From Mobula birostris (lineage: Eukaryota): a DNA stretch of 64,000 bases. Every line of letters begins with the position of its first letter. The first letter of the stretch is position 1. Location of the stretch: NCBI RefSeq assembly GCF_030028105.1, contig NC_092384.1:3267665-3331664 (forward strand). Direction: 5' to 3'. The notes under the pieces are model-generated. The model was not told the DNA's origin. It worked only from the letters and a program-made list of their open reading frames with translations, and did not search any database. Below are positions 19,295 to 64,000 of the stretch, piece by piece. Made by a program: the position numbers and the translations under genes.

Positions 19295-19597
19295 CTGTGC
19301 TGTAGTTGATGATGATGTAAGTGGCTAGAGCAGGATCCCGGAGGGTGACGTGAGGTACCAGACAAGTGTAGACTGTCCCGGTTGGCACAACCTCTGTCAC
19401 TGACAATCTGCTGGAAGCTTCATATAGCCCATCCGAAGTGGAGTTGGTAACCGTCGAACCGGTTGCAATTTTAGTGTCATCTTTATACCAGGTGAAACTG
19501 ATATTGGTTGGGTAAAAGGGCGATGTAGTGCACAGTAGAGCCAAGGCTTCCGATTTCTCTGGATCTCCGGAGTAAATTTTCAATTGAGCTGGAGGAA
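19295..19597 (-). CDS. Ig C1-set domain exon (C1a), gene A
   Basis: ttcttag|TT CCT CCA GCT CAA...ACA G|gtgaga; 303 nt, phase 1-1, open; [14 protein letters not shown]...YTCLVPH. Confidence 0.92.
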
Positions 19598-20024
19598 CTA
19601 AGAAATATTGGAATAGATGGATGAATGGTTGTTTACGGTTAGCTGTATATTCTCGGCAATATCAGCGTTCGATTCTATTAACATAAAAGCCAAATATTTA
19701 AGATTACAACGGCAGGAATTTAAATTGCAATGGGGGAAAATAGTTCTCGATATCTAACCGAGCAAATCGTCGATCATATGGGATCAGTGGCGCCTGTATT
19801 TTAATTTTCCGCAACTCAAAGAGCTCCAGAATTTAATGTTGAAATGAATATTTATGTACAAATACATTAGCCAGATTTTGATTAGTATCGTTGAATACTC
19901 CTGTTTTATATAGTCAACGCGTGTCGCTACGATTAATACTGTTATTCTATTTAAAAGAAATTGTACAAAAGACAATTTCTCAGTCGCAATTTCGCATCAA
20001 CTGAATCGCTTCTAATGCACCTAC

Positions 20025-20675: not shown

Positions 20676-20870
20676 TGCTTATGCGAACCGCAGCGCCATC
20701 GTCTTCGAAACCGATTATGTTTTTAGATTGTATTGTTAATAACCTACGGTGTGCAATTTCATTGGATGAACTAAATCCCTGCGGCCCGAAATCTCACTGC
20801 ACTATCTCCTCACTCATTCCCACGTGTCCACTCTCGTTGTCACACCACTTCCCAGCCCCATCACGAACTC

Positions 20871-32074: not shown

Positions 32075-34820
32075 AAGAAGTGCGTGCAATTATTGTCACC
32101 AAGTTATTGGAAGGACATCTTTAAACTTATGGGGATCCAGCAAAGTTGCCCAAGAACGTCACCAAGACTGGAGGGCTTAACGTATCAGGAAAGACTGGGT
32201 AGTTTGCGGTTTCCTTTCCAATGGTACGTGCGAGACTGAGAAGACACCATATAGATATATGTAAAATCACAAAGGAGAAGATAGGTGAATGATTAATCTC
32301 TTTCTCAGGGTAGTGAATTCTAAAATTAGAGAAAATTAGAGGGAGGCATAATAAAGGTTACGTGTTGCATGATTTTCAAACAATTGGTGGTAAATATATG
32401 CAACGAAACACCAGACGAAATGATAGAGCCAGACCAATTGGAACATTTCTCTGGAATTTAGACAGCTTCACTGCGAAGAAAAGTTTAAAATAGTATGGGT
32501 CAAGATATGAGAAATGTATTATTTCTGATTGGCCATTTGGAATGCGTGGAAGATTGGGCCGAAGGAATTATTTCTGTGATGTGTAACGCAGCCATTTTAT
32601 GACTTTATTAGGCACACATTTTGTTCAAAGCACTGAAAACTGAATGTAACATCTATTTTGTTGCCTCCTGTCTATGCTTCCATACCTGATAATCAACTGC
32701 ATTTCCTGAAAGGTTTTGGGCATGCTAAGTTGAGTTGTGACATGCATATAAGTAATGCAGAGATCTTACCCAGCTCCCTCTGAGAGCCTGTTTTCTTCAC
32801 TGAGCAAATTCAGTGGTTTATATATATCTCTATGCTCATCACAACGTCGAATTTCTTGGTGAACAGAACTATAATACTTCAAATACACCAACACAGTTCA
32901 CCTATAAAATCTACATTGTAATTCGCTGCGTAATAATTATAATTACCAACCACTTGCGGTATTTCCATTACGTATTAATTTACCCAATGCGCGATGATGA
33001 AGAAAGGCAAAAATCTGCTTCTTACTCGTAAACGGCTATTCTCGAATAAAAGATGAGCAACACATTTCATAGTAGCAGTAACCACATCAGAGTTAAGGGA
33101 AAGGTCAGATATTCGCTGTTTCCGCTAGTAATTAAGTAACCAATTTGCAGATACAATTCATTCAATCTTATCTCTGCTTGGCTTCACTTTTTCTCATTTA
33201 ACCTGATCGTATTTCTATTCTAGGCACCTAAGAGCATACCAATTACATTTTACACATCCAAAGCCGGGAAAGGAAGTTGCGAAGTTACTTTCATCGATAC
33301 CTTTGGTCGTACAAGTGTATTAACGTCACAGGAAACAATTACGTAATAAGTAGTAAACTGAAGTGAGGGTGAAAATCTTCGAAAACATTTTATTCAGACG
33401 AACGGGAATTCCTTCGCAGTTGCGGGAGTGCCTGCCAGTTAATGTAACTGCATGTGGAATGAGTCAACAAAAAATAGAATGATGCGATATATCATCAGTG
33501 TTCAAGCCATCCCGAATCAAATTATATTAGACATATTACTAAAGCAGATTGTGAGTCTGTGCAAGGAGAGGGGCGCTATTATCCAGGAAGGAATGTGGTG
33601 TTCCGCTCTTCACTGAACAGATGGAGCACGTGTCAAATTTATTAATAAAATAAATCTTTATGATATTGAAAGAGTTTATGACTATAAAGAGCTGCTTTTA
33701 TAGCTAAGTATCTAACTGTAAGAGTTTATTAATATTACTGTGTTAATAAACTCTTGCAGTTTATTGACACTGTATAAGCTGAATTCTTCGAAACTAATTT
33801 ATAGATTTGACAGTTCTCTCTCATTTGTTCAATGTTCTATATTTAAATTTACCAGGTGACTCAGAGTATCTAGCATCTGGATTTCAGTGCTCAAACTGAG
33901 AGCTTCACGATGTGAGTATGAATGTTTTAAAGCTCAGGTATGGAGTCAGTTATCAGATTGTCGGTATTATTTATTTGTTTTTATTTTTAATCGTATTTTC
34001 TATAATATGTTCCTCCATGCCAATGCTTGAGGGGTTGCAACATGGCAAGAATTCACATAATATATATTGATTTTATTACAGCAGACTCAGGCAAGTACAT
34101 TATTTTGCAGAATTACAGAATGTAAATATGAAGGGAACTTCAGATACTGCAAGTCTGCCCCATCAGCGAGCTGTTCGTTCGCCAAGGAGCTGAAGGAGCT
34201 GGATTCCGTGCAGGCCGCGTTGTTGCTTGCTATAGGAAGGCACTGGAGTCACTGTGTGACGGCAACGCGCACTCTAACTACGAGTAATTGTGTTGAATGC
34301 TTCTCCTCCGATCGTAAGACCCTGTTTGACAATAATAATATAAAATGCTGCAAAGTCCGCTTCCCTGTTTGTTGGATTGACAGCAACCGGGAGAGTTGAG
34401 TGGCCTCGGTTATAGAGAGGACAAGACCTCAAACCATGGGCTTGCCTGTTGCAGCAGTCTTGGAGAGGAGACGGCGGAGGCGGTGTAGCGCAGCCTCCAT
34501 GCTGAGTCGGGGGCCTGCAGTATTCGATCAGTAGAATGACAATAGACAATAGACAATCGGTGAAGGAGTAGACCATTCAGCCCTTCGAGCCAGCGCCATC
34601 ATTGATGGTGATCATGGCTGATCATCCGCAATCAGTACCCTTTTCCTGCCTTCTCCCCATATGTCTTCACTTCGCTACCTTTAAGAGCTCTATCTAAGAC
34701 AAGCTCAGTTGTGTACGTACTTGCTTGTGCGTGTACGTTTGTCTTTGAGAAATGCATGTTCTTGCCGACAGCACACATGCATCATCAGCTTACAGGGCAT
34801 GTCACTCAGGGACTTGGGCT
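32075..34820. repeat. Segmental duplication block X, copy 2
   Basis: Colinear with 8319-12530; lacks the solo LTR and ~11255-11815; carries its own short CR1 tail insertion. Confidence 0.9.
34537..34697 (-). mobile_element. Short CR1 3' tail insertion
   Basis: (tagacaa)n tail; gacaa on both sides; absent at the paralogous site ~12400. Confidence 0.75.
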
Positions 34821-35270
34821 ATATTATATTTTTAGTGTGAGCACTTATGTGTGTTATATGTGCCCTGTGCTGTGTTTTACTGTTGATATTGTGTCTTGGC
34901 TCCGGAGTAATGCAGTTTCGTTTGGCTGTATTGGTGGGTATTTACGTATGGTTGAATGATAATTAAGCTTGAACTGGAAAAGACTAATATCCATTTTAGG
35001 CTTTACCTATTGCGTGGGTATATTGCAAATGCAAAAATAGAGCAGGATAAATAAACTGTTGAAAAAATAAACAGTCTAAAACTTTCTTTTTGCGAAGAAG
35101 AAGTATTTCAGAATTTATATTGTAAACATTTCTCTGACACTATTCTAATGCAATGTGGGAAAGAGTGCGTGGTGTGGTGTTTGTGGGATTGGTGGTTTGT
35201 TTTTTGGTTGTTCACTTTCTCCTTTGGGAGCTGCGATGAGGTGTGCTAGCATTTAACACAAACACCTAAA

Positions 35271-38889: not shown

Positions 38890-39760
38890 AATTTATCAGA
38901 CCAAAAGACACACGAGCCGAATTAGGCCATTTGCCCCATCAAGTAACCTTCGCCGTTCAATCATGGCTGATCCTTCTTTTTCCTCCTCAGCCTTTTTTCC
39001 CCGTAACTTTTGATGCTGTGTCCTAACAATAATCTATCAAGCTTTGCGTTGTTACACCCAACGGCCTGGCATCCACAGCTGTCTGCCGTAACAAATTTTA
39101 CAAATTCATCATCGTCTGGCCTAAGGCATTTTTGCGCACCACTAGAGTTTTAAGTAGACGCCCCTCTATTCTTTTGTCCAAGACTCCCCCACAATGGGAA
39201 ACATCCTTTCCATATCTACTTTGTTTAGGCCATTCAACATTCGAAAGGTTTCAATGAGATCTCCCTTCATCCTTCTAAATTCCAGCGAGTACAGACCCAA
39301 ATCCATCACACCTTCCTCGTATGATAATCCTTTCACTCCCTGAACAATCCTCTGAGCCCTCCGCAATGCTTCCTTCGACTAGAAGCCCAGAACTGTTCAT
39401 TATACTGAAGGTGAGGCCTTATCAGTGCCGTATAAAGCTTCAGCATCACATCCCTGCTCTTGTATTGTAGACCATTTGAAATGAATGTTAACATTGCATT
39501 TGCCTCCTCAGCACCGACTCAATCTGCAAGTTAATATTTAGGGTGTTCTGTACAACGACTCCCAAGTCTCGTTACATCTCAGATTTTTGAATTTTCTCCT
39601 CGTTTATAAAATAGTCTGTACATTTATTTCTTCTAAGAAACTGGCTGACCATGCAATTTCCAACACTGAATTTCATTTGCCACTTTCTTGCACATTCTCC
39701 TAATCTGTCTGTCCTTCTGCAGCCTACCTGTTTCCTCAACACTACCTGCCCCTTTTAGTT
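38890..39760 (-). mobile_element. CR1 3' fragment (paralogue at 42440-43055 + 46448-46710)
   Basis: ORF 39166..39366 is RT C-terminal. Confidence 0.85.
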
Positions 39761-40647
39761 TCTAACCAGGTTCTAAATATCCTCAGTATGAGTAACCTCC
39801 GTTTCCGATCCATCCAAACGTCTCACATTTCACCTGTGCTCATGCGTTTGCGATCCGATGACGAATTAACTGTTTGCAGTTCCAGAACATAGTATATGCA
39901 TATTGGAAGACCATAAGCTATCAACCGGATGGATACCGGACTCTACTGGAGGATCGTAACTTTGGCAAAGTACTGCAACCGATTTCATCCGCTAGATATA
40001 AGGCCACGAACGGGTTCAGTACTTTGGGAACTTCGACCTGAAATAAGGGCTTCAATTTGGTAAATTGATACATATCCCTGTACCGCTTAGGTGTACTGCT
40101 TGTTTCTTCTTGTCAAGCAACGGACATTGCAGTTAAAATTCAATCAGGTAAAACAAATTCCAGGTTTGGCACGTTTAGTACTTGGGATTCCGTTACGAAT
40201 AAATAACGTCGACACTTTCCATTTTTCTCGGCGGTGAATCGACTGCGTCGTCCCTATGATAAACCATTTCTGATTTCTTGGTCTCTGCCACGGCGATAGC
40301 GGCATAGCTCCAGTTCCTATGAGGCGGCCTCTGCTTGGTCTGAAAAATCCACATTAGCCGGCATATATCATTGCTTTCATTTTTTAGTCACATTGAGTTT
40401 CATGTTAAATATAGTCCCGAGAACTGCGCAAAATCACCACTGTCTCAAAAGACTACCAACTTACAGTGCTTGTTTCATTACCTGCAAGTATAAATAGTTG
40501 AACTTTTGTGGCGGCTTATCTCTATTTTATCTCTACCTATTCTGCCACATAGATGAATTATACTGTATCCTGTACTAAAAAGATCAACGGTTTGCACAGC
40601 GGACGAAATGCAGAATTAGGGTCATAGTCAACTCATCCACCACCTTA

Positions 40648-40815
40648 CTAAATAGCAGAGCAGTTGGATAGAACGAAATGCTTATACTTGCTCCAAATTC
40701 CCACGTTAATACGTACCTGCGCGTAGACAGTCCTCTCTTGATTCAAGGACCCTGGAACTTTCCGGGATTTGGTAAGATCTAGTGCAGCGTACGGCATCAT
40801 CGCCTCGCTTGTAGA
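40648..40815 (-). CDS. Cytoplasmic terminal exon, distal copy (ITIM-like MPYAAL + ITSM TVYAQV), gene B
   Basis: tttcaatctatgcag|TCT ACA AGC...ATT TAG; open; STSEAMMPYAALDLTKSRKVPGSLNQERTVYAQVRINVGIWSKYKHFVLSNCSAI*. Confidence 0.75.
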   Translation of the reverse strand, partial: STSEAMMPYAALDLTKSRKVPGSLNQERTVYAQVRINVGIWSKYKHFVLSNCSAI

Positions 40816-41687
40816 CTGCATAGATTGAAACACATTTTAAAAGTGCATGAGCCAGAAACGATCAATACACACAAACATACAATGCCGATTATGAATCTCT
40901 ACAGCCTTCATCAACGCACCTGCACGGACAGTAAAAAAGAAAATAACATACATCGCGTCGACAAAGCTCCTCAGTATGATCTTTGATATCCGGTAAATTA
41001 CCTTAATTTCAATACTTGCTTGATGTTCGACTTTACATTCACAAAACGACAACTTCTCGCCAAGAATTAAAAGTAAGTAATAAGTAAGTTCAGCTACAGA
41101 CCATGTTAGTGCTTGCAACGACATACGGTAATTTCAGTTTTTGATTACTAGCTTCACTTAGTCATAAATGAAAAGCCTATTTCCGGCTACATTTTGTAGT
41201 TAAGTCCGTGCCACAAACAGAACTAGCCTGTCACTTTCTTTTGAGGATACAGTACAGAATAGGGAACTGCTATTCCAGCAGTAGTCTGAAGGTACGACCA
41301 GACCGCCCCAGGCAAGGACGGCAGGTATGATCAATATTCATGTCATTGCTCTGGAGTTAAAAGCATCCAATAATAAATCATCTGTTTTGTTGTTAGCAAG
41401 CAAGGTTGTTAGAAAGTGAGTTAAAAATATCAGCCTAGCAAAGTAGGATATAATCTGTTATCAATGTTAACAGACAAAATATATTAGAAACATGAAACAT
41501 TAAAGAAAAAACCTGCAGTGCAATACAGGCCTTTCGGCCCACAAAGCTGTGCCGATCATGTCCCTACCTTAGAACTACCTAGGCTTTACCCACAACCCTC
41601 TATTTTTCTAAGCTGCATGTAGCCATCTAGTAGTCTCTTAAAAGACCCTATCGTTTCCGCCTCCTCCACCGCCACCGGCTGCCCATG

Positions 41688-43056: not shown

Positions 43057-46000
43057 ATGTCTCAGATCGAGTCCAGAGTTTTCTGAGGGGAGAGGGCGAG
43101 CAGCCGGAAGTCTAGGTACATGCTGGTACCAATGACATAGACAGAAAAAGAGAGGAGGTCCTGAAGAAAGATTACTGGGAGCAGGAAGAAAATTGAAAAG
43201 CCGGACCTCCAGAGTAATAATGTCAGGATTGCTGCCTGAGCTGCGCGCTAATGATGGTACGAATAGCAGAATTAAGCAGATGAATGTATGGCTAAGTAAC
43301 TGGTGCAGGGGGAAAGGCTTAAAATTCTTGAATCATTGGGATCTATTTTGGGGAAGGTATGACGTATTCAAAAAAAGATAGATTACACCTAAATCCAAGA
43401 GGTATTAATATCCTGGCAGGATTGTTTAAAATAGCTGTTAGGGAGGGTTTAAACTGAGTTGGCAAGGGGAAGGAAACCAAGGTGTTAGGGTCGAGGAAAA
43501 GGATAATAGAAATAAGTCAAAAATACTGTGCATCAAAGATTGCAAGAAGGACAGGCCGGTGAATATACAGGATAATTTGCTGAAAAATAGAAATATAGCA
43601 AAATCGACAACCGATACTGATCTAAATGTACTGTACTTAAATGCATGCAGCATTAGAAATAAAGAGGATGACCTTACATGCACAGCTGCAGGTTAAAAGA
43701 TATGACAATATGGCCATCACTGAGTCATGGCTAAATGATGAATGTGATTGGGAGCTGGATATCCAAGGATACACAGTGTATAGTAAAGATAGGAAGGTAG
43801 GTAAAGCGGGTGGCGTGGCTCTGATAGTAAGTAACGATATCAAATCAATAGAAAGAAGGGGCATAGGATCAGAAGAGTTAGAACCCTTATGGGTAGAATT
43901 AAGAAATGGCAAGGGTAAAAAAAACACTAATAGCAGTTATATACAGGGCTCCGAACAGCAGCCGGGATGTGGACTACAAGTTGCAGCTGGAAATAGAAAA
44001 AGCGTGTAGAAGGAAAATGTCAAGATAATTATGGGGGATTTTAATATGAAAGTGGATTGGGAAAGTCGGGAACGTAATGAATCTCAGGAGAGGGAGTTTG
44101 TAGAATGCCTACAGGATGGCTTTTTGGAGCAACTTGTCCAGAAGCCCACCAGGGGACCGGCTGTTTTGGATTGGGTGCCGTGTAACGAACCTGAGGCGAT
44201 TCGGGAGCTGGAGGTAAAGGAACCCCTTGGAAGTAGTGATCATAATATGCTTGAGTTCAGTTTCAAACTTGAAAAGGAGAAGCTGGTATCAGGTGTATCG
44301 ATATTTCAGTGGAACAGGGGAAATTACAGTGGTAGGAGAGAGGAACTGGCCCAAGTTAATTGGAAAAGTGAACTAAATGGAGGGACGGCAGAGCAGAATT
44401 GGATGAAATTCCTACAAGAAATAAGGAAAATGCAGGAAAAATATATTCCAAGAAAAAAGAAAATCATGAATGGAAAAATGGCACAAATGTGGCTAACGAG
44501 AGAGGTTAAGGCAAAAATAAAAGCAAAAGAAACGGCGTACAAGGAAGCAAAAATTAGTGGGGAAAATGAGGACTGGAAGACCTTTAAAAACTTACAGAAA
44601 GAAACTAAGAAAGTCATTAGGAAAGAAAAGTTGAATTATGAAAGGAAGTTGGCGATTAACATAAAAAAGGATACTAAGAGTTTTTTTTTAATATATGAAG
44701 AGTAAAAGAGTGACAAGGGTAGATACGGGACCGATTGAAAATGATGTTGGAGAAATTATAATGGATAACAAAGAGATGGCGGAGGAACTGAATGAATATT
44801 TTTAATCAGTCTTCACAGTGAAAGGCATGAGAAATATACCTGATAGCCAGAGGTATCAGGCAATAGAATTAAGTACGGTCAAGATTACTAGAGAGAAAGT
44901 GCTTGGGAAGCTAAGTGGACTAAGAATAGATAAGTCTCCCGGTCCGGATAAGGTGCACCCAAGGGTTCTGAAGGAGGTGGTTTTGGAGATTGCAGAAGCA
45001 TTGAAAATGATCTTCCATGAATCAATAGACTCTGGCATGGTTCCGGACGACTGGACGGTCGCAAATGTAGTTCCGTTATTTAAGAAAAGAAGGAGGCAGC
45101 AAAACGAAAATTACAGACCTATTAGTCTGACGTCGGTAGTTGGAAAGATATTGGAGTCAATCCTCAAGGACGAAGTTATGAAATACCTCGAGGTGCATGA
45201 AAAGATAGGCCGAAGCCAGCATGGTTTCATGAAGGGAAGATCCTGTCTCACCAACCCGTTGGAATTTTTTGAGGTAATCTCGAATAAGATTGACAAGGGC
45301 GAGGCTGTTGATGTTGTGTATTTGGATTTTCAGAAGGCCTACGATAAGGTGCCGCATATGAGGCTGGCTAATAAGATGAGAGCCCATGGAATTATAGGAA
45401 AGATATTGAAATGGATGGAGCATTGACTGATAGGCAGAAAGCAAAGGTTGGGAATAAAGGGATCCTATTCTGATTGTTTGCCAGTTACTAGTGGTGTTCC
45501 GCAGGGGTCGGTGTTGGGCCGCTTCTTTTTACGATGTATATCAATGATTTGGATTATGGATTAAATGGTTTTATGGCTAAGTTTGTGGATGACACCAAGA
45601 TAGGTGGAGGAGCAGGAAGTGTTGAAGAAACGGAAAGATTGCAGGGAGACTTAGTCAGTTTAGGAGAGTGGGCAAAGAAATGGCAGATGAGATACAACGT
45701 TGACAAATGTACGGTTGTACATTTCGGAAGAAGAACTAATCGGACAGATTACTATTTAGATGGGGAGGAAATTCAAAAAACGGAAGTGCAAAGGGACTTG
45801 GGGGAAGCGAATGCTATGTTGGCATTCATTTCAAGAGGAATAGTGTATAAGAGTAAGGAGATGTTGATGAGGCTCTATGGGGCATTGGTGAGACCTCATT
45901 TGGAATAGTGTGCTGTTCGTGACCCCCGTCTTAGAAAGGATGTACTGATGTTGGAGAGAGTTCAGAGAAGATTTTCGAGGATGAATTCTGGAATGCAGGT

Positions 46001-46447
46001 GCTAACATATGAGGAGCGTTTGTCGCTTTGGATTGTATTCATTAGAGTATAGAAGAATGAGAGGGGATCTCATAGAAACATTTCGAATGTTGAAAGGGTT
46101 TGACAGAATCGATGTGGAAAGGTTGTTTCCCTTGGTGGGTGTGTCCAGGACAAGAGGCCATAGTCGTAGAATTAAAGGGTACCCAGTGAAAACAGAGATG
46201 AGGAGATTTTTTTTTTAACCAGAGGGTTGTTGATTTGTGGAATTCGTTTCCACATACAGCTGTGTGGCCCGATCATTGAGGGTGTTTAAGGAGGAGGTTG
46301 ACAGGTATCTAATTAGTCAGGGTATCAAAGGATATGGGGAAAAAGCCGGAAATTGGAACTAGATGGGTGAATAATTTAGCTCATGGGGGAGCTGCGGAGC
46401 AGACTCGATGGGCCGAATGGCTAAATTCTGCTCCTTTGTCTTGTCTT
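43057..46447 (+). mobile_element. Long CR1 LINE (ORF1 SGNH-esterase end, EN, RT, tail) nested in an older CR1
   Basis: ORFs 43193..43381 (SGLLP...NVWL..WC...FLNHWDLFWGR), 44031..44705, 44818..45426, 45534..45908; ttgtcttgtcttg tail; the host CR1 is uninterrupted at ~39490. Confidence 0.93.
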
Positions 46448-47598
46448 GTGATTGTATTTGCCTCCTCAACACCGACTGAACATGCAAGTTAATATTTAGG
46501 GTGTTCTGCACAAGGACTCCCAAGTCCCTTCACATCTCAGATTTGTGGTTTTGCTCCCCGATTATAATATAGTCTGTACATTTATTTCTTCTGCCAAAGT
46601 TCATGACAATACAATTTCCAACACTGAATTTCATTTGCCACTTTCGTGCCCATTCTCCTAATCTGTCTGTCCTTCTGCAGCCTAACTGTTTCCTCAACAC
46701 TACCTGCCCCTTTTAGTTTCTAACCTGTTTCTAAATATACTCAGTATGAATAACCTCCGTTTCCGATACATCCAAACGTCTCACATTTCACTTGTGCTCA
46801 CGAATTGTGATCCGATGACGAATTAACTGTTTACAGATACAAAACATCGTATATGCATATTGAAAGACCATAAGCTATCAACCTGATGGATAGCGGAATC
46901 TACTGGAGGATCGTAACTTTGGCAAAGTACTGCAACCGATTTCATCCACTGGATATAAGGCCACGGACAGGGTCAGCCGTTTGGGAACGTCGGCTTGAAA
47001 TAAGGGCTTCAGTTTGGTAAATTGACACATATCACGGTACCACTTAGGTGTACTTCTTGTTTCTTGTTGTCAAACAAGCGACATTGCAGTTAAAATTCAA
47101 TCAGGTAAAACAAATTCCAGGTTTCGCACGTTTAGTATTTGCGATTCCGTTCCGAATAAATAACGTCGACACTTTGCATATTTCTGGGCTGTGAATTGAC
47201 AGTGTCGTTCTCCCTATGATAAACTATTTCTGATTTCTTGGTCTCTGCCACGGCGATAGGGGCGTAGGTCAAGTTCCTATCAGGCGGCCTCTGCGTGGTC
47301 TGAAAAATCCACATTAGTTGGGAAAAATCATTACTTTCATTTTTTAGTCATACTGAGTTTCATATTAAATATAGTCCCGAGAACTTCCCAAAATCACCAC
47401 TATCTCAAAAGACTACCAACTAACAGTGCTTGTTTCATTACCTGCAAGTATAAATAGTTGAACTTTTCTGGCCGCTTATCTCTATTTTCGCTCTACCTTA
47501 TCTGTCACGAAAATGAAATATACTGTATACTTTAAGAAAAAAAATTCAACGGTTTGCACAGCAGAGGAAAAGCAGAATTAGGGTGAACCATCACTTTA

Positions 47599-47766
47599 CT
47601 AAATAGCAGAGCAGCTGGATGGACGGAAATGCTTATACTTGCTCCAAATTCCCACGTTAATACATACCTGCGCGTAGACCGTCCTCTCTTGATTCACTGA
47701 CAATGGAACTTCCCGGGGTTTGGTAAGATCTAGTGCAGCGTAAGGCACTATCACCTCGCTTGTAGA
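47599..47766 (-). CDS. Cytoplasmic terminal exon, proximal copy (ITIM VPYAAL + ITSM TVYAQV), gene B
   Basis: tttcaatctatgcag|TCT...TAG; phase 0 matches the upstream 38-nt exon; STSEVIVPYAALDLTKPREVPLSVNQERTVYAQVCINVGIWSKYKHFRPSSCSAI*. Confidence 0.85.
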   Translation of the reverse strand, partial: STSEVIVPYAALDLTKPREVPLSVNQERTVYAQVCINVGIWSKYKHFRPSSCSAI

Positions 47767-48973
47767 CTGCATAGATTGAAACAGAGAAATATACACATTT
47801 TAAAAGTGCAGGTGCTAGAAACGATCAGTAAGCACAAACATACAATGCCAATTATGAATCTGTACGGCATTCATCAACGCATCTGCACGGTCTGTACATC
47901 GCGTCGACAAAGCCCCTCAGTATGACATTTGATATGCCGTACATTACCTTAATTTCCATACGTCTTGGTATTGGACTTTACAGTCGCAAAATGACAACTT
48001 CTCGCAAAGAATTAAATGTAAGTAATAAGTAAATTCAGCTACAGACCATGTTAGTGCTTGCAACCACATACGGTAATTTCAGTTTCCGATTACTAGCTTC
48101 ACTTAGTCATAAATGAAAAGCCGGTTTCGGCTACATGCTGTAGTTAAGTCCGTGCAACAAACAGAACTAGCCTGCCACTTTCTTTTGAGGATACAGTACA
48201 GAATAGGGAACTGCTATTCCAGCAGTAGTCTGAAGGTACGACCAGTCCGCCCAGGCAAGGACGGCAAGTATGATCGATATTCATGACATTGCTCTGGAGT
48301 TAAAAGCATCTAATAAAGATCATCTATTTTGTTGTTAACAAACAAGGTTGTTAAAAAGTGAGTTTAAAATATCATCCTAACAAAGTAGGATGTAGTCTCC
48401 TATTAAAGTTAACAGACAGATTATATTAGAAACATCAAACATAAAAAAAAAACTACAGTACAATGCAGACCCTTCGGCCCACGACGCTGTGCCGATCATG
48501 TCCCTACCTTAGAACTACCTAGGCTTTACCCATGGCCTTCTATTTTTCTAAGCTGCATGTAGCCATCTAGAAGTCTGTCAAAAGACCCTATTGTTTCCGC
48601 CTCCACCACCGCCACCGGCAGCCCATTCCACGCACTCTCACTCTCTGCGTAAAAAACTTACCCCTGACATCTCCTCATATTGGATGCTAAATACTTTTTT
48701 TGCTGTCTAGAAGACAAACGCAGAGATTTCTAGTTTCATTGTTACGCGGTTGATAATGCTAAAATTGTCTACAAATTAAGCTGATGGTAATTAGAGGAAG
48801 AAGCGAGTGTCAACTGTCCTGCGGGCGTGGATATCCAATCCGCATCTTGATGATAATATTGTAAACTAATAACAAAATACCCACGACAAAGAACCTGTAG
48901 GTACACATATATATATATATAGTGTATTAGTTATTATGTTTTACATACAATTCAATCGGGTTTGGATACATAC

Positions 48974-49011
48974 CAGGCATTGATCGGATCTGTCTTCCTC
49001 CTTTTCCGTGC
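48974..49011 (-). CDS. Short cytoplasmic exon, gene B
   Basis: ttatttaatttccag|GC ACG GAA...TGC CTG|gtatgt; 38 nt, phase 1-0, bridging the TM and ITIM exons in frame (GTEKEEDRSDQCL). Confidence 0.75.
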
Positions 49012-49687
49012 CTGGAAATTAAATAAGTTAAGAATTAGCATATTGTCATCAAAGACAGAGGCTTCTTCTCGAGTTACTGGACATTACTAAACATTGCAAA
49101 GGAATTACCTCTTTTCCAGTGTTTTTTTTTAATATTAGAATGACTGTTCTGATGTCGACGAATCTTAATGTTGGTTTTTGCCTTTGGGGCTTACAATGCC
49201 GGCATGGAAAGAGAATTCGTCTGCAAAGTTTCTGCGAGCGCCAGTGTCTCCCCGAATGCCGGAGTTCAGCATTAATGAATTCTCAGTCACCAAAAATGCG
49301 CTGTGCATACTAAGTAAATGAGAGAATTCCTTATATATTAAATTGGAGGATAATTTCTTACGTTGAGTTACAACTTCCAGTTCTTTTAGACGATCATTTG
49401 TTTTTGACCAATTCAAGCTAAATTCATCAGGACTTAGTGATCATTAACGCAAAACCTTAGTTAATGATAGAAGGTGAACATGCTGAGGTCTCAAAGCCAA
49501 TTATCTCTTAGGTAATGACGGAAAGAGTGAAATACGCTTACGAAGAAAGTATCTTTCTGGATTTTCAAAAAAGGTGAAACGCTACCTAAAGAGTAAATCA
49601 GTTGGTGACAGTTTGGAGTCTTTAGCAGAATGATCATCAGAACTTGGGAAAGAATGCCGAAGGAAACGTAACTGCACAAAGTGAGCA

Positions 49688-49853
49688 GTGACGGTCAGTA
49701 CAACTGGGACCAACATAACTACTCATAGTGCCAAGTGATGGTCAGTACAACTGGGACCAACATAACTACTCACAGTGCCAAGTGACGGTCAGTAGAATTG
49801 GGACCAAATAATTACTCATAGTGCCGAGTGAGGGTCAGTACAACTGGGACCAA
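49688..49853. repeat. ~47-bp minisatellite, ~3.5 copies
   Basis: Unit gtgacggtcagtacaactgggaccaacataactactcatagtgccaa. Confidence 0.9.
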
Positions 49854-50424
49854 TGATGTTAGTAGTTAGACTCGGAAGCAAACAGAGAGCTCTAAATTTG
49901 TATGTGACACAAATTTGAGAGAGATCCTCAGTACTGAGAACATTACAGCGGGTTATCAGAATCTTGATAAACTGATTAAACATGCGCGATGGTGGATTTC
50001 AACCGAAGGGACCAGAAGATCGTTCATTACTTGGAACGTGCGAATCCTATGGTCGAAGAGTGTAGGGGTCTCGGTGCATAAACGCACGACAATTTTACAC
50101 TACGTCTCTGGTGGGCAAGACCGTAAAACTCAGGTTTAGAGAGCCAAGGCTGAAAAGAGGGACATTATGCGAAACATGACTGCATCTCACTCAGAGTGAC
50201 CAGTATAACGGCCTGTGTAGAAAAATAGGGCTCAAACACGTTTTTTTTTTGTTTTTGTTTTTGTTTTTGAAACTATTTGCAGTAATCGTAAAAGAAATGT
50301 AAGGACATCCATTACAGATTGAGTCTCCTTTCTCATAACAAGGACGAGGGATGGCATAATAAGTGTCTTAAAATTTTACGAAATTATTAGGGAATTCGAT
50401 ATAGGAAGATTAAACATAACACCA

Positions 50425-53400
50425 TAGGGCCAGAAGATAAAGCAGCAGAAATAGCCTATTCAGCCCATCGAGTCTGCTCTGCCATTCAATTTTGGGCTGC
50501 TCCAGTTCTTTCAGTCATCCCCATTTCCCTCCCTACTCCCCATACCCTTTGATGCCTAGCTAATCAAGAACATATCTATCTCTGCATAAATGCACCCAAA
50601 GTATTGGCCTCCACAGCCGCTCGTGGCATCAAATTCCACAGATTTTTCATCCTCTGACTGAAGTAATTTCTCCGCATCCCTGTTGTTAGTGGACGTCCTT
50701 CAATCCTGAAGTCGCACCCTCTTGTACTGGGCTCCGCTACCATGGGAAATAACTTCGTCATATCTAAGCTGTTTAGGACTTTTAACATTCGGAATGTTCT
50801 AAGAGGTCCCCGCACCCCACCCCCCCCGCACTCAACCTATCTCCTGAACGCCAGGAAATACAGCCTAAAATGCGATGCATTCCTCATACTGTAAACCTTT
50901 CATCCTGGAATCATTCTCGTAAATCTTCTCTGAACCCTCTACAATGTCTGTGTATAATATCTAAAATAAGGAGCCTAAAACTGCACACAATACTCTAAGT
51001 GTGGTTTCACGAACGCCTTAGAGCCTCAACATCTGATCCCTACTCTAATGTTCTATGCCTCCAGAAATGAATGCCAACATTGCATTTGCCTTCCTACCAC
51101 CGACTCAACCTGGAGGTTAAACATTAGGGTATCCTGCACATGGACTCCCAAGTCCCTTTGCATCCCTGCATTTTGAATTCTCTCTCCATCTAAATAGTAG
51201 TCTGGCCGTTTGTTTATTACAACAAAAAGCATGACCATACACTTTCCAACTAGTATTTCATTTGCCACTTCTTTGCTATTCCCCTAAGCAATCTAACACT
51301 CTCTGCACGCTCTCTGTTTCCTCAACACTACCCGTTCCTCCACCTATCTTTGTATCGTCGGCAAAATTAGCTACAAAGCCATTAATCACCCAGTCCAAGT
51401 CATTGGCATGCATCATTAAAAGCAACCGTCCCAACACGGACCTCTGTGGAACTTCACAGGTAACCGGCAGCCAGCCAGAATAGAATTCGTTTATTCCCAC
51501 TCTGTTTTCTTCCGCCAGCCAGTTCTCTACACATGGGATCTTATCCTGCTAAGCAGCCTCATGTGCGGCACCTTCTCAAAGGCCTACTGAAAATCCAAGT
51601 AGCCCACATCTATTTCATCTCATTTGTCTACTCGGTTTGTAATTTACTCAAAATTTGCAGTAGGTTAGTCAGTCAGAATTTTCCTTTAAAAACCCATGCT
51701 CCCTTTGGCCTATCTTGTCATGTGCCTCCAGGTACTCCGTAATATCATCCCTAACTATCGATTCCCAACAACTTCCCAACCACTAATGCCAGGCTAACCG
51801 CTCTATAGTTTCCTTTCTGCTGCTTCCCACCCGTCTCAAATAGCGGATTAACATTTGCAATTTTCCAGTCATCCGGTACAATGTCAGAACATATTGATTC
51901 TTGAAAGATCATTGTTAATGCCTCCACAATCTCTGCAACTACTTACTTCAGAACCAGAGGGTGCATTCCATCAGGTTCGGGAAATTTATCCACCCTCAGA
52001 CCATTAAGCCTCCTGAGCACCTTCTCAGTCGTAATTTTCACTGCACAAGCTTCACTATCCTGACACTCTTGAATGTCCGATATACTGCAGATGTCTTCCA
52101 CTCTGAAGACTGAAGCAAAATACGCATTCAATTCCTCTGCTATCTCTATGTCTCTCATTACAATATCTCCAGCGATATTTTCTATTGGTCCTATATCTAA
52201 ACTCAACACTCCTTTACCCTTTATATACATAAAGAAAGCTTTTAGTATCTTCTTTGATATTAGTCGCCAGGTTTGTTTCATAATCCATCTTTTCCTTCCT
52301 GATGACCTTCTTAGTTTCCTTCAGCAAGATTTTAAAAGCTTCCCAATCCTCTGTTTTGCCGTTAGCTTTGGTTTCCTTGTACGCTCTCTCTTTTGCTTTT
52401 ACTTTGGCTCTGACTTCATTTGTCAGCCACGGTAGTTTATTTCTTGCATTCCAAAATTTCTTTTTATTTGGAATATATCTGCTTCGCATTTCCCACATTT
52501 TTTTTTCGCAGGAACTCCAGCCATTGCTGCTCTGCGATCCTTCCTGCTAGTCTCCCTTTCCAGTCAACTTCGGCCAGTTCCCCTCTCTTGCCATTGTAAC
52601 TTCCTTTAATCCGCTGAAATACCGACACATTGGAATTTAGTTTCTCCTTCTCAAATTTCAAAGTGAACTCTATCATATTGTGATCACTGTTCCCTGAGGG
52701 TTCCTTAACATTGAGCTCCCTTATCACCTCCAGATCAATGCACAACACCCAATCCAGAACAGCCAATCCCCTAGTGGGCTCAACAACAAGCTGTTCTAAA
52801 AAGCTATTCCTTAGAAATTCTGCGAATTCTGTCTCTTCAGGTCCAGTCCTGGCCTAGTTTTCCCAACCCACTTTCATCTGAAAATCCCTAACGATTATCA
52901 TGACTTTGCCTTTCCGTCACGCCTTTTCCATCTCCTGTCGTAATTTGTAATCCACATCTCGGCTTCCGCTTGGAGACCTGCATACAACTGTCATTAGGGT
53001 CCTTTTACCCTGGTCTTTTATTAACTCAAGACAGAGTCTCTACACCTTCTGACCCAATGTCATCCTTTTATAATATTATTATTTCTTAATCACAGCACAC
53101 CCTCTGCATACTAACCTATCTTTCCCATACACCAAATATCCTTGGACGTACAGCTCCCAATGGCAGCCATCCTTTAGCCAAGTTTCAGAGATGGCCACAA
53201 CGTCATACTTGCCAATCTGTATCTGAATTTTAAGATCGTCCACTTTATTCCTTATGCTGCGTGCATACAAACAGAACATTTTCAGCCTGGTATTTGTTGC
53301 TTTCTGTTTTAACTGCACTGTGCCTCTACTATCCTGTAACTCATCCCACTGGCTGTGATTATGCCTCATCTCCTGCCTGTCCTTTGTCTCTTCTCTGTTG

Positions 53401-54010
53401 CACGCTATCATTGCTTTACTTATGTTTTCCCCTTCCTCAGCCCCATCACTCTAGTTCTCATCCCCCTGCCAAATTCGTGTAAATTCTCACGAACACCTCT
53501 ATTAAATCTGCCTGCAAGGATAATGGACCCCTTTGGGTTTAGGTGTAACCCGTTCCTTTTTATATAGTTCGAACCTCCCCCAGAAGAGATCCCAATGATT
53601 CAGAGTTCCGATGCCCTGCTCCATACACCAGTCTCTCAGCCTCGCATTAATGTGCCTGAAAATGCTATTCTTGCGCTGGTTAGCACCTGGCACAGACAGC
53701 AATCCTGAGAATACTACCCTGGGGGTCCTGCTTTTCAGCTTCCGGCAAAACTCCCTATAATCTGTCTTCAGGACCTCCACGCTTTTTCTACCTATGTCAT
53801 TGGTACCAATGTGTAACAAGACCTCTGACTGTTCACCTTTTCCCTTCAGAATACTCGACACCCGATCCGAGACATCTCGTACCCTGTGACCTGGGACGCA
53901 ACACACCATGCAGGTATCTTTATCAGGCTGACTTAACAACCTGTCTGTCCCCTTACTATGGAATCCTCTATGACTACCCGATTCCTCATCCTCTTCTCTC
54001 CTGGGCAGAA
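50425..54010 (-). mobile_element. Near-full-length degenerate CR1 LINE (ORF1 esterase, EN, RT)
   Basis: ORFs 53502..53939 (VLLHIGTNDIG...), 53079..53411 (YDVVAISETWL), 51943..52766, 51053..51500, 50576..50815. Confidence 0.92.
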
Positions 54011-54012
54011 GG

Positions 54013-54290
54013 AGAAGATGGCGGCGCGACGCAGCTCGCAGCGGCCACTCCGGTGGTGATATTTGTTATCTGTCAAGTAGGGTGCCGTTCACAAGCCTGA
54101 TTTGATGGAGACAGACGTGAGAGCACGGAGGAACATCTGGTGAAACATCTGAAATGTCTGCTTCGCTGCCGCTGCTTCAGAGCCCAGCTCTGCATCCTAT
54201 CCATGTCAGTTTGAAACATCCGGCAAACTTCAACAGAAGCTCCGAAGACCTTACCCCTGCGGGAGGAATGATCTTCGCCCAGAAGTCGTA
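54013..54290 (+). mobile_element. GC-rich interspersed repeat / LINE 5' fragment
   Basis: aagatggcggcgcgacgcagctcgcagcggccactccgg... is recognised from memory as a common ray repeat start. Confidence 0.4.
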
Positions 54291-54846
54291 TGAAGTCGTG
54301 TGGTGAAAACAAAAGCACAAGGGCGACCAACCTTCTATCAGCCCAGGATAGAGAGAGTGGGTACAAACAGAAGGATAACGTACGAGTATTTCAAAATCCC
54401 TGGTCCCCATTAAGCTTTGTGCACACAAGTTAGCTGGGATATCAGTGCTTCCCAAAAAATGCAGAGAGAGTCTGTGGGCCGGATGAATGGGATAAGTTTT
54501 GTTGGATGAGAGTGGCATTGCGAGAAGCCGAACATGAACGGATTAATGGACATGGTCGAGCTGCTGTCGACAGTCAATGCCACGGTAGGTGTGGAGGGAT
54601 TAAGAAGACAGAGAAGAAGAAAACCCAAAAGAAATTTGAAAAAGAACTGTGCCAACATCGTATTGAGATTATGGAGTCACGGTGATTTACGTTAGAGGAG
54701 CATAAATCATGGCCCGCGCTGGCGTGCCGATATGTACGATGTAATCAGTTGTAACCTACTGGAATGATGAAGGAATAGATAAAACTTCCCTCTCACTCTT
54801 TCTTTACCCACCTTCCCCTGCACGTTCAGCTAATTCAGATTCTTAC

Positions 54847-54957
54847 CTTTATTTTTCCTTGCTATACATCGCTTCGCAATGAGAAGAACCAGCAATATAG
54901 ACACCAAACCGCTCAATGCACATACGAAGGTCATGACGTTATTGATAGTCCTAGCTC
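54847..54957 (-). CDS. Transmembrane exon, gene B
   Basis: tttcaattttccag|GA GCT AGG...AAT AAA G|gtaaga; 111 nt, phase 1-1; ARTINNVMTFVCALSGLVSILLVLLIAKRCIARKNK (uncharged TM, basic stop-transfer). Confidence 0.9.
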
Positions 54958-56467: not shown

Positions 56468-56770
56468 CTGTGCTGTAGTTGATGACGATGTAAGTGGCTA
56501 GAGCAGAAACCCGGAGGCTGACGTGAGATACCAGACAAGTGTAGACTGTCCCGGTTGGCACAACCTGTGTCACTGACAATCTGCTGGAAGCTTCATATAG
56601 CCCATCCGAAGTGGAGGTGATAACAGTCGAACTGGTTGTAATGTTGGTGCCATCTTTATACCAGGTGAAACTGAAATCCATTGGGTAATAGGGAGATGTA
56701 GTGCACAGAACAGCCAAGGCTTCCGATTTCTCTGGATCTCCGGAGTAAATTTTCAATGGAGCTGGAGGAA
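56468..56770 (-). CDS. Ig C1-set domain exon (C1c), gene B
   Basis: ttcttag|TT CCT...ACA G|gtgaga; 303 nt, open; 23 nt differences from C1a; flanks paralogous to C1a. Confidence 0.9.
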
Positions 56771-57820
56771 CTAAGAAATAGTGGAATAGATGGATGAATG
56801 GTTGTTTACGGTTAGCTGTATATTCTCGGCAATATCAGCGTTCGATGCTATTAACATCTTCGAAACCGATTATGTATTTAGATTTTAATGTTAATATCCT
56901 ACGATGTGCAATTTCATTGGCTGAACTAACTCCCTGCTGCCCGCAATCTCACTGCACTATCTCCCCACTCATTCCCACGTGTCCACTCACGTTGTCACAC
57001 CACTTCGCACACCCACCACGCACTCCTTTAACATCTACTTAATCTACCCTTCCCCGACTCACTGCTCCACGGCTGTTTCCTCGCGAACCTTCCACCCTTG
57101 CCACCCTTGCATCCGACAATAAAACGAACTATGGCGAAGACACCAAAACCCTAACAGCTTTTGGCAACTTGTATGCGCCTTTTACATAATCCTCCTGATT
57201 TTTCCGATAGGACGGCAAAATTTCCCTGAGGCAAAATGAAGTTGTTGATTTCATACTATCCTCGGTTTGTGCTAAGCCTCTTTGTAGGAGGATTGCGTTA
57301 TTTCATGTGAAATTACTTCCAAAGTCGGGAAACCATTTCAGATGATACGGTTGAGAGACATTAAGCTAGAGTACGGCAGAGAAACAGCAGAATCATCGCC
57401 ATCTTCCTTAAGTGAGTCAGTTTCGCGCAATTCACCAAACCTTTGTCTGGAGACTGATATGAGTTTAACTGGGAACAGGTAGAAATCATTTTACGACCAG
57501 TGGTTTGTTTATTTTGTGTAATTTCCCATAAACCACTAATCATTTAATGATAATCAAAGACTATGATTAATTCTTCCTCCTTTTTTTCTGCTTTCCTCAA
57601 CGCTGAAAATCACCCTGCATTCCGCACACCTTATCAAATTACTTGGTAATATACAGTGACACAATCTGATCGGCTTTGATGAGGCAGGGTGGGACAGAGA
57701 ACTTGATTTGTTGTCTGGATGGCTGTAATTTCGGATGCTTTGGGATGATTTAATAATAACTTGGAACACACATATTGCAGGTTTTGTTTTAAACGGAGGC
57801 AGTATTCAATTTAAGAGAGA

Positions 57821-62136: not shown

Positions 62137-64000
62137 AGACAATAGACAACAGGCAATAGGTGCAGGAGTAGGCCATTCGGCCTTTCGAGCCAGCACCACC
62201 ATTCACTGTGATCATGGCTGATCATCCACAATCAGTATCCAGTTCCTCCCTTATCCCCATAACCTTTGATTCCACTATCTTTAAGAGCTCTATCCATCTC
62301 TTTCTTGAAAGCATCCAGAGACTTGTCCTCCACAGCCTTCTGGGGCAGAGCATTCCATATATCCACCACTCTCTGGGTGAAAAAGTTTTTCCTCAACTCC
62401 GTTCTAAATGGCCTACCCCTTATTCTTAAACTGTGGCCGCTGGTTCTGGACTCACCCATCAGTGGGAACATAATTCCTGCCTCCAGCGTGTCCAATACAT
62501 TAATAATCTTATATGTTTCAATAAGATCCCTTCTCAGTCTTCTAAATTCCAGAGTATACAAGCCCAGTCGCTCCCATCTTTCCACATATGACAGTCCCGC
62601 CATCCCAGGAATTAACTTTGTGAACCTACGCTGCACTCCCTCAATAGCAAGAATGCCCTTCCTCCAATTTGGAGACCAAAACTGCACACAGTACTCCAGG
62701 TATGGTCTCACTAGGGCCCTGTAGAGCTGCAGAAGGATCTCTTTGCTCTTATACTCAATGCCCCTTGTTATGAAGGCCAACATGCCATTAGCTTTCTTCA
62801 CAGCCCGCTGTACTTGCATGCTTGTTTTCAGTGACTGATGTACAAGAACACCTAAATATGGTTGTGCTTCCCCTTTTCCTAACTTGACTCCATTTAGATA
62901 ATAATCTGCCTTCCTGCTCTTACCACCAAAGTGGATAACCTCACATTTATCCACATTAAACTGCATCTGCCATGCATCTGCCCACTTACCCAGCCTATCC
63001 AAGTCACCCTGCTTTCTTTAACATCCTCCTCACATTTCACACTGCCACCCAGCTTTGTGTTATCGGAAAAATTGCTAATGTTACTTTTAATTCCCTCATC
63101 TAAATCATTAATATATATTGTAAACAGCCGCGGTCCCAACACTGAACCCTGCGGTACCCCACTGGTCACCACCTGCCATTCTGAAAGGGACCCATTAATC
63201 GCTACTCTTTGTTTCCTGTCAGCCAGCCAATTTTCAATCCATGTCAGTACTCTGCCCCCAAAACCATGTGCCCAAATTTTGCCCACTAATCTTCTAAGTG
63301 GGAATTGATCAAAGGCTTTCTGAAAGGTCAGGTACACTACATCCACTGGCTCTCCCTTGCCCATTTTCATAGATACATCCAGAAAACATTCCAGAAGATT
63401 AGTCAAGCACGACTCCCCCTTCGTAAATCGATACTGACTCGGTAGGATCCTGTTACTGCTATCCAGATGTGTCGTAATTTCATCTTTTATAATTGACTCC
63501 AGCATCTTTCCCACCATCGACGTCAGGGTATCCGGTCTATAATTCCCTGTTTTCTCTCTTCTTCTCTTCTTGAAGAGCGGGACAACATTAGCCACTCTCC
63601 AATCCACAGGAACGGATCCTGTACCTATAGAACATTGGAAAATAATTACTAATGCGTCCACGATTTCTAAAGCCACCTCCTTATGTACCCTGGAATGCAG
63701 ACCATCAGGTCCCGGGGACTTATCAGCTTCAGATCAAACAGTCTATCCAACACCATTTCCTGCCTAATAAAAATTTCCGTCAGTTCATCCATTACCTTAG
63801 GTCCTTTGGCCACTATTATATCTGGGAGATTGTTTGTGTCTTCCCTAGTGAAGGCAGATCCAAAGTACTTGTCTCAACTCGTCTGCCATTTCCTTGATCC
63901 CCGTAATAAATTCACCCGTTTCTGACTTCAAGAACCCAATTTTGATCTTAATTATTTTTTTTTCCTTATCACATACCTAAAGAAGCTTTTAATATGCTCC
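62137..64000 (-). mobile_element. CR1 LINE (RT half; continues beyond the window)
   Basis: (tagacaa)n tail; ORFs 62232..63002 and 62894..63676 (VTSGVPQGSVLGP, FSDNTK). Confidence 0.95.

Follow-up and report, generated by a model that had tools for sequence, protein, structure and literature searches.

A 5'-truncated gene of Mobula birostris and its predicted place in a VJ-C1 receptor family of cartilaginous fishes with ITIM-bearing tails

The tails of PECAM-1, the CD33-type Siglecs and CEACAM1 are encoded by short exons and include an ITIM and, after it, a motif of TxYxx[V/I] type (TVYSEV in PECAM-1), and the fish NITR and skate MDIR receptor families have both inhibitory and activating members. 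The ectodomains of all of these are of the C2/I-set or V-only kind, the exception among the systems considered here being chicken PRARP, a non-rearranging VJ-C1 gene pair. In the tail of SIRP-alpha, xTYADL-type and xEYASx-type tyrosines alternate. The SIRPs are defined by one V and two C1 domains, by ITIMs with SHP recruitment and by a DAP12-paired SIRP-beta (PMC12975943), and PRARP is named in PMC10751288. The ectodomain of PD-1 is a lone V domain without any C domain, its ITSM in amniotes is of the form TxYxx[V/I], and separate PD-1 homologues have been reported in Chondrichthyes (PMC11599192). UrIg2 has 9-11 C domains, and no ITIM is mentioned in its description (PMC12227049).

We analysed a window of 64,000 nucleotides from Mobula birostris (contig NC_092384.1), in which one gene, here called gene B, had been described in an earlier note as having a PD-1-like tail. 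Its exons and the features that lie in or beside them are as follows.

56468..56770, minus strand: C1-set Ig exon, phase 1-1, the earliest exon recognised in this copy, splice sites read
54847..54957, minus strand: transmembrane (TM) exon, phase 1-1, with an uncharged hydrophobic core and then KRCIARKNK
50434..53875, no strand assigned: retroelement (RT/endonuclease ORFs) inside the 5.8-kb intron between the TM exon and cytoplasmic exon 1
48974..49011, minus strand: cytoplasmic exon 1 (cyt1), 38 nt, phase 1-0, acidic linker GTEKEEDRSDQCL
47668..47766, minus strand: cytoplasmic cassette exon (cyt2), 99 nt, phase 0-0, with VPYAAL and TVYAQ and the donor CAG/gtatgt
47748-47731, minus strand: ITIM VPYAAL, in cyt2
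47682-47668, minus strand: TVYAQ, at the 3' end of cyt2
47599..47667, minus strand: intron stretch translated in the earlier note (VCINVG...SAI and a stop), a peptide absent from homologues
47132..47299, minus strand: terminal coding exon, 55 codons and TAA, acceptor tttttcag
47272-47255, minus strand: second canonical ITIM, LTYAPI, in the terminal exon
46581..46586, minus strand: AATAAA, a candidate polyadenylation signal 545 nt past the stop (pattern match only)

The stretch 56770-47132 probably comprises the C1, TM and cytoplasmic exons of a VJ-C1 family copy, with a tail in the order ITIM, TVYAQT, ITIM and with the leader and VJ exons deleted. The C1 exon is recognised as a Pfam C1-set domain (E=1.6e-11) and shares 89-91 % DNA identity with both C1 exons of a second gene in the window, gene A. 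The TM, cyt1 and cyt2 exons described in the earlier note are indeed seen on the minus strand, and canonical splice sites are found throughout the C1, TM and two short cytoplasmic exons. Two predicted proteins reproduce the exon joins, including the one between cyt2 and the terminal exon, namely P0008 from M. birostris and P0184, an M. hypostoma gene model with the full plan of leader, VJ, C1, TM and tail. No annotated protein of gene B itself was found in a search with P0008. The TM exon, which aligns with the TM regions of both proteins, has a hydropathy peak of 2.67 over VMTFVCALSGLVSILLVLLIA with no charged residue in the core, as had been claimed, and a counterpart of cyt1 was found in P0008, P0184 and the Callorhinchus locus L001. 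The retroelement in the long intron has a 68 % match to 46442-43057, in inverted orientation.

The earlier note had taken the cassette to be the last coding exon, ending in ...TVYAQVCINVG...SAI and a stop, and had read in it a PD-1-like pairing of ITIM and ITSM that might recruit SHP-2 or SAP. Though the read-through frame does stay open for 22 codons, to the stop at 47601-47599, the donor CAG/gtatgt is strong and stands at the same position in ray and elephant shark, the terminal exon is present in all homologous proteins, and the ectodomain is of C1 and not PD-1 type; we regard this model as very improbable. The Val of TVYAQV is GTA, the first intron codon after the donor, and it is uninformative because any GTA or GTG donor that is read through gives Val. 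After TVYAQ, P0008 and P0184 both continue with TKQRPP..., matching the window exon 47299-47132, and the boundary in the elephant-shark (Callorhinchus) locus is identical (TVYAQ/gtaaag ... cag/ACC AAA). Given this homologue-supported splicing, in which the +3 Thr is encoded by ACC at 47299-47297, the middle motif of gene B is therefore TVYAQT, and a canonical ITSM (T-x-Y-x-x-V/I) was ruled out, the +3 residue being T (or S). Hence, of the proposed tail the membrane-proximal canonical ITIM VPYAAL stands and the ITSM does not, and the stop at 47601-47599 belongs to an intron, homologues continuing into the terminal exon. The SAP/SLAM proposal falls with the ITSM on which it was based.

With the terminal exon the tail is approximately 55 residues longer than the version first read. 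It consists of an ITIM, TVYAQT, a second ITIM and then more tyrosines, LTYAPI being followed by IVYHRE, VIYSER and a C-terminal Tyr. The tyrosine of VPYAAL lies 22 residues from that of TVYAQT and 36 from that of LTYAPI. The terminal exon is 84 % identical to the C-terminus of P0008 and 78 % identical to that of P0184. This exon and the ITIM in it had been overlooked in the earlier note. VPYAAL and LTYAPI both fit [S/I/V/L]xYxx[I/V/L] and the TM is uncharged, and the gene B exons are thus predicted to encode the tail of an inhibitory-type IgSF receptor, from which SHP recruitment would be expected. The tail is assembled from short exons, namely the acidic linker, the 99-nt phase-0 cassette and the terminal exon. 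If the tail works as those of SIRP-alpha and other ITIM receptors do, both ITIM tyrosines, 36 residues apart, would be phosphorylated by a Src-family kinase, and the phosphorylated ITIMs may then dock the tandem SH2 domains of SHP-1/SHP-2-type phosphatases, damping activation. The gene model is corrected accordingly to one with a longer tail, two ITIMs and no canonical ITSM, and therefore neither SAP/SLAM-type nor PD-1-type signalling can be inferred from the tail.

A gene B-type tail was found in 63 of the 214 proteins fetched, from batoids, sharks and a holocephalan. In the aligned tail segments, the tyrosine is kept in 59 of 62 for the first ITIM, in 53 of 67 for TVYAQ and in 65 of 68 for the second ITIM (LTYAxL-type). 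The earlier note had made its reading depend on conservation of the tyrosines in other rays and sharks, and among rays, sharks and chimaeras this holds for VPYAAL and, for the most part, for TVYAQ. At its -2 position the first ITIM varies, being canonical in only about half of the family, and the +3 position of the middle motif is mostly T, with V or I in a minority only; the tail consensus is YATL...TVYAQT...LTYAAL...TEYAQL. The genomic locus in Callorhinchus has the same exon plan as the gene B tail. The ectodomain comprises a VJ and one C1 domain in P0184 and sometimes two C1 domains (P0001 and gene A). Members of the VJ-C1 family are already predicted in public annotation, under inconsistent automatic NCBI names that are mostly SIRP-alpha-like and also tapasin-related, Ig lambda-like, NCR3LG1-like and CD276.

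A search with the tail only (Callorhinchus P0047 residues 258-368) returned chondrichthyan proteins exclusively, including a V-only 'NCR3-like' protein with the same tail, and no tetrapod SIRP, PD-1, PECAM or Siglec, a blank that is weak evidence because the search requires shared 5-residue words. The profile of the whole family gave 61 chondrichthyan matches followed by a large gap to unrelated IgSF proteins, and tetrapod SIRPs were absent from the matches of this word-filtered search. We found no paper on a chondrichthyan VJ-C1 ITIM family in the literature searched on SIRP, ITIM and sharks. On these comparisons, the non-rearranging VJ-C1 immune-type receptors form a multigene family that extends across the cartilaginous fishes, and gene B is predicted to belong to it.

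The 5' part of gene B was examined by comparing the window with itself, and 56005-56857 matches 18832-19684 while 56857-57026 matches 20702-20871. Relative to gene A, the leader and VJ exons of gene B have been lost by a precise deletion of about 1 kb.

56850..56865, minus strand: junction of the deletion of about 1 kb that removed the leader and VJ exons, reading TTCGAAGA / TGTTAATAG
20536-20482: leader of gene A, in the segment missing from gene B
20345-20025: VJ exon of gene A, in the segment missing from gene B

No V exon was found upstream of gene B within the window by tblastn with P0184. Alone, gene B is unable to make a normal receptor, and since its leader and V exons are deleted it may be a relic. 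The copy is probably either decaying or dependent, with its 3' exons still intact. In comparisons between paralogues in the window, the C1 exons gave dN/dS values of approximately 0.8-1.4 and the cassette one of 0.87, on small site counts, and no purifying selection on the gene B copy is apparent from these values; being near 1, they cannot show that the copy is functional.

Downstream, a 3.6-kb tandem duplication, in which 39493-41686 corresponds to 46451-48626 with 88 % identity, gives a second cassette and a second terminal exon.

40717..40815, minus strand: distal cassette paralogue (MPYAAL, TVYAQ), acceptor and donor intact, in the tandem duplication
40193..40339, minus strand: distal copy of the terminal exon, with WSYAAI where the proximal exon has LTYAPI, shortened by a 3-nt in-frame deletion and by a stop that comes six codons sooner

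No other copy of the TM or cyt1 exon was found in the window, and gene A is therefore without the tail of gene B. Duplicated cassettes are also seen in the M. hypostoma model P0184, which has two.

Two further readings of the copy were weighed. Gene B might still be in use, its C1, TM and tail exons being spliced to the leader and V exon (perhaps also a C1 exon) of a family member next to it, upstream of the window, to give an inhibitory receptor of the V-C1-C1 or V-C1 type, or being expressed as a V-less stub. The four 3' exons have all stayed intact, splice sites included, at approximately 10 % divergence from the paralogues, the family has V-C1-C1 members (Amblyraja P0001, and gene A in the window), the model of P0008 also starts at an internal Met within the C1 exon, and exons past the end of the window (>64000) could supply a leader and V domain. 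However, over the 7 kb that precede the C1 exon of gene B there is only homology to the upstream flank of gene A and retroelements, dN/dS is near 1, and a product started at the internal Met would have neither a signal peptide nor the first Ig cysteine, and we consider continued use unlikely, if by no means negligible. A little less likely still is an isoform in which the cassette is spliced to the distal cassette at 40815-40717 and then to the distal terminal exon at 40339-40193, skipping the proximal terminal exon, so that the tail has two ITIM/TVYAQ cassettes. Both cassettes are 99 nt long, phase 0-0 and intact at acceptor and donor alike, the two cassettes in P0184 are consecutive and precede its terminal exon, and repeated tail modules occur in several family members. 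Yet the acceptor of the proximal terminal exon is good, the exon ends in a stop codon and an AATAAA lies farther downstream, P0008 shows only one cassette, the -2 positions of the distal ITIMs (MPYAAL and WSYAAI) are both non-canonical, and P0184 is a model computed from a different genome. Our preferred reading thus remains a truncated VJ-C1 copy with a single cassette and the proximal terminal exon.

The locus belongs to a large and apparently unstudied family of non-rearranging VJ-C1 receptors of cartilaginous fishes, which is relevant to the origin of inhibitory/activating paired receptors and of antigen-receptor-like V-C1 genes. Gene B itself, being 5'-truncated, is chiefly of value in illustrating how such clusters undergo birth-and-death turnover and how exon cassettes are duplicated in them.

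Compared with the described systems, UrIg and UrIg2 share with this family a non-rearranging VJ with C1-set domains and occurrence in cartilaginous fish, and UrIg2 (9dmx) is the best match among solved structures for both the gene B C1 exon and the family profile. That match is spread over several domains at approximately 20-46 bits each, as expected of generic C1 similarity, and membership of the UrIg/UrIg2 group was rejected on domain number, a single C1 exon preceding the TM here against many C domains there.

With PD-1, gene B shares an uncharged TM and, close to the membrane, an ITIM with a T-x-Y motif 22 residues further on, but it differs in the C1-set exon before the TM, in the TVYAQT middle motif and in the second ITIM and additional tyrosines. 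The PD-1-like order of motifs proposed earlier is not specific to PD-1, because an ITIM followed by TxYxx is common to many inhibitory receptors. Gene B does not belong to the PD-1/CD28 group, since it has a C1 domain and no canonical ITSM; the C1-set exon immediately precedes the TM exon, the two phases being compatible, and the intact relatives are VJ-C1.

With SIRP-alpha/SHPS-1 (PTPNS1) the family has in common a V domain that ends in a J-like GxGTxLxV, one or more C1-set domains, an uncharged TM and a long multi-Tyr ITIM tail, and the alternating tyrosines of the SIRP-alpha tail would presumably parallel those of the family consensus. Like the SIRP paired receptors, it forms multigene clusters with short-tailed relatives that have an Arg-bearing membrane anchor (gene A, exon at approximately 16040-15930, and Hemitrygon P0003). 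It typically has one C1 domain whereas SIRP has two, and gene B is without any V domain. Against solved structures (PDB), the family profile scored 117 bits with UrIg2, 111 with an IgA1 heavy chain, 96.7 with SIRP-alpha, 83.8 with SIRP-gamma and approximately 80 with antibody light chains; with SIRP-alpha below UrIg2 and IgA and little above the light chains, the profile does not establish SIRP orthology. It is a tentative and, in our view, rather doubtful proposal that the VJ-C1 family is a sister or surviving form of SIRP whose four-Tyr tail of ITIM, TVYAQT, ITIM and TEYAQL predates the split from bony vertebrates, with the invariant, non-ITSM TVYAQT as a docking site of its own and the cassette duplicated, in evolution and perhaps through alternative splicing, to tune inhibition. 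The predicted family of gene B resembles SIRP rather than PD-1.

The exons of gene B were read directly from the window sequence and have mutually compatible phases, with an AATAAA located 545 nt past the stop codon. The exons reported in the earlier note, its ITIM (VPYAAL) and the pentapeptide TVYAQ are all present, and the transmembrane (TM) core is, as it had claimed, uncharged (0 charged residues).

56770-56468, minus: C1-set Ig exon, phase 1-1, acceptor cttag, donor ACAG|gtgaga (Pfam C1-set, E=1.6e-11)
54957-54847, minus: TM exon, phase 1-1, acceptor ttttccag, donor AAAG|gtaaga
49011-48974, minus: cyt1 exon, acidic linker, 38 nt, phase 1-0
47766-47668, minus: cyt2 cassette exon, 99 nt, phase 0-0, acceptor atgcag, donor CAG|gtatgt
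47748-47731, minus: VPYAAL, canonical ITIM and first tail motif
47682-47668, minus: TVYAQ, at the 3' end of the cassette
47299-47132, minus: terminal coding exon, good acceptor tttttcag, phase 0, ends TAA
47272-47255, minus: LTYAPI, second canonical ITIM

The spliced translation runs ...INYST-G-ARTINNVMTFVCALSGLVSILLVLLIAKRCIARKNK-GTEKEEDRSDQCL-STSEVIVPYAALDL...NQERTVYAQ. The earlier note had continued this to TVYAQV, taken as a canonical ITSM, and had ended the protein at the stop codon at 47601-47599. The V is encoded by GTA, the first three intron bases at the donor CAG|gtatgt. With the gene B C1 exon as query, HMMER searched 1.8 billion cluster representatives and found close relatives. 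Among them, the predicted Mobula birostris protein XP_072135332 (P0008), which shares 89% identity with the query across the matched C1 part, reads on past TVYAQ into TKQRPPNKNVTYAPI...VIYSERNPKY, a sequence encoded within the window at 47299-47132. The full-length Mobula hypostoma model P0184 likewise continues past TVYAQ into terminal-exon sequence. In L001, the elephant-shark locus that encodes family member P0161, a TM exon (phase 1-1) is followed by a short linker exon (phase 1-0), a cassette (phase 0-0) that ends ...ERTVYAQ|gtaaag and a terminal exon that opens cag|ACC AAA. Because this exon plan is common to the window and L001, the donor is conserved from ray to elephant shark, a holocephalan, and, since a GTA or GTG donor is always read as Val, the apparent ITSM arises from translating through it. 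The homologues and L001 splice on, giving TVYAQT, and neither the ITSM nor the earlier protein end survives.

TVYAQT, the second gene B tail motif, lies 22 residues after VPYAAL and does not match TxYxx[V/I]. LTYAPI lies 36 residues beyond the first ITIM and is followed by IVYHRE, VIYSER and a C-terminal Tyr. A homologous tail is present in 63 of the 214 proteins fetched, from batoids (Amblyraja, Leucoraja, Pristis, Hypanus, Mobula), sharks (Heterodontus, Heptranchias, Scyliorhinus, Mustelus, Stegostoma) and the holocephalan Callorhinchus. In a profile alignment counted per aligned tail segment, not per protein (some of the 63 have repeated tail modules), Tyr is retained in 59/62 segments at the first motif, 53/67 at TVYAQ and 65/68 at LTYAxL, and the family consensus is ...YATLxLT...PKHQEERTVYAQTKQG...NKLTYAALxL...SxEYAQxQ.... 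The +3 residue of the middle motif is T in most, and V or I in a handful only. Hence, the tyrosines are kept in other rays and sharks, the test that the earlier note had set, but the form in which the second motif is conserved does not fit the ITSM. Mobula-type tails, that of gene B among them, lack the distal TEYAQ[L/I] motif seen in sharks and chimaeras. P0168 (Callorhinchus milii, 'NCR3-like isoform X2', 266 aa) is V-only, with no C1 Pfam match, and has the same tyrosine tail (tail alone, E=7e-15), indicating that in chimaeras the tail module is joined to differing ectodomains.

Upstream of the C1 exon, gene B tracks gene A, the related receptor gene in the window, to A:19684 and resumes at A:20702, with a clean deletion junction (TTCGAAGA|TGTTAATAG). 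The segment of gene A that is absent, approximately 1 kb, holds two exons.

20536-20482: gene A leader exon, counterpart of the family leader
20345-20025: gene A VJ exon, counterpart of the family V domain

No other V exon was found upstream of gene B to the window end by tblastn with P0184. The earliest in-frame ATG lies within the C1 exon, at the place where the P0008 model begins too, and its product would have neither signal peptide nor first Ig cysteine. Among the window paralogues, dN/dS was 0.8-1.4 for C1 and 0.87 for the cassette, values that, from small numbers in fast-evolving families, offer no evidence of constraint. The two cassette copies have 7 amino-acid differences, all outside the cores PYAALDLTK and NQERTVYAQ, a suggestive hint noted after the fact. 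Gene B keeps intact 3' exons but is truncated at the 5' end, and is a relic unless it draws on exons past 64000.

The second cassette belongs to a tail duplication (46451-48626 versus 39493-41686, 88% identity) with a retroelement between the two units.

40815-40717: distal cassette, intact splice sites, MPYAAL and TVYAQ
40339-40193: distal terminal exon, WSYAAI, 3-nt in-frame deletion, early stop

P0184 has two cassettes in succession, and repeated tail modules occur in several further members; judging from these homologue tails, cassette stacking is plausible in the family. LINE-like retroelement copies with RT/endonuclease ORFs lie in both orientations (21063-23610, 43057-46442, 50434-53875, 62155-63733), one splitting the tail-exon duplication and another inside the gene B TM-to-cyt1 intron, in which a ~94-bp unit is also repeated 2-3 times in tandem (86% identity, 49665-49853).

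On the minus strand at 14863-16040, 3' of the two C1 exons of gene A, are two exons similar to the terminal part of Hemitrygon P0003. One, TM-like (...RTLLFSRCVWFRFVFLIFGILLF...), carries Arg within or at its membrane anchor, and the other is a short tail exon without Tyr, which suggests that gene A is the activating-type counterpart to the inhibitory tail of gene B. At the junction of the two exons the phase disagrees with the frame of P0003; they could be joined in the other open frame. Between the two C1 exons of gene A, tblastn with P0003 and P0184 picks up a stop-containing fragment of a V exon (18755-18871, minus), which fits an origin of the V-C1-C1 gene by fusion of two ancestral units. 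A GC-rich block at 6500-10400 (GC up to 0.51) is internally repeated (e.g. LEARLEAGDLR-type repeats), stays open over long stretches in several frames of either strand, and is partly duplicated (6516-7174 versus 9342-10048; 7373-7822 versus 9979-10422). Segmental homology of 88-91% between 8318-12531, downstream of gene A, and 32076-34825, downstream of the duplicated gene B tail exons, indicates that the whole window is a large tandem unit repeated, each formerly with a complete receptor gene.

The exon structure, motifs, motif conservation and uncharged TM of gene B are directly established. By analogy with ITIM receptors such as SIRP-alpha, its ITIM tyrosines would undergo Src-family phosphorylation, the tandem SH2 domains of SHP-1/SHP-2 would dock on the ITIMs, and activation would be inhibited. 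The observation in the earlier note is partly confirmed and its interpretation partly supported: gene B belongs to a known kind of inhibitory receptor, of which it is an ordinary, 5'-truncated example. The PD-1-like tail proposed there lacks a canonical ITSM and any specific PD-1 link. PD-1 has a single V domain, whereas gene B has a C1-set exon, ruling out PD-1 membership, and Chondrichthyes are reported to have PD-1 homologues of their own (PMC11599192).

Intact relatives have, in order, a leader, a VJ-type V domain (ending GNGTGSTLVVL), a single C1-set domain, TM and the gene B-type tail (P0184). Their automatic NCBI names vary; 'tyrosine-protein phosphatase non-receptor type substrate 1-like' (SIRP-alpha-like) occurs most often, alongside tapasin-related, Ig lambda-like, NCR3LG1-like and CD276. 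When compared with solved structures, the family profile scored 117 bits with UrIg2, 111 with the IgA1 heavy chain, 96.7 with SIRP-alpha, 83.8 with SIRP-gamma and ~80 with antibody light chains, and hence the ectodomain is a generic antigen-receptor-like V-C1. Tail-only and whole-profile database searches, limited by a word filter, matched essentially chondrichthyan proteins only. UrIg/UrIg2 differ in having many C domains, and ITIMs are unmentioned in the describing paper (PMC12227049). Under the definition of SIRPs in PMC12975943, the family fits in part, by architecture and by signalling design, having V and C1 domains, an ITIM tail and paired short-tailed relatives, and is SIRP-like rather than a demonstrated SIRP orthologue.
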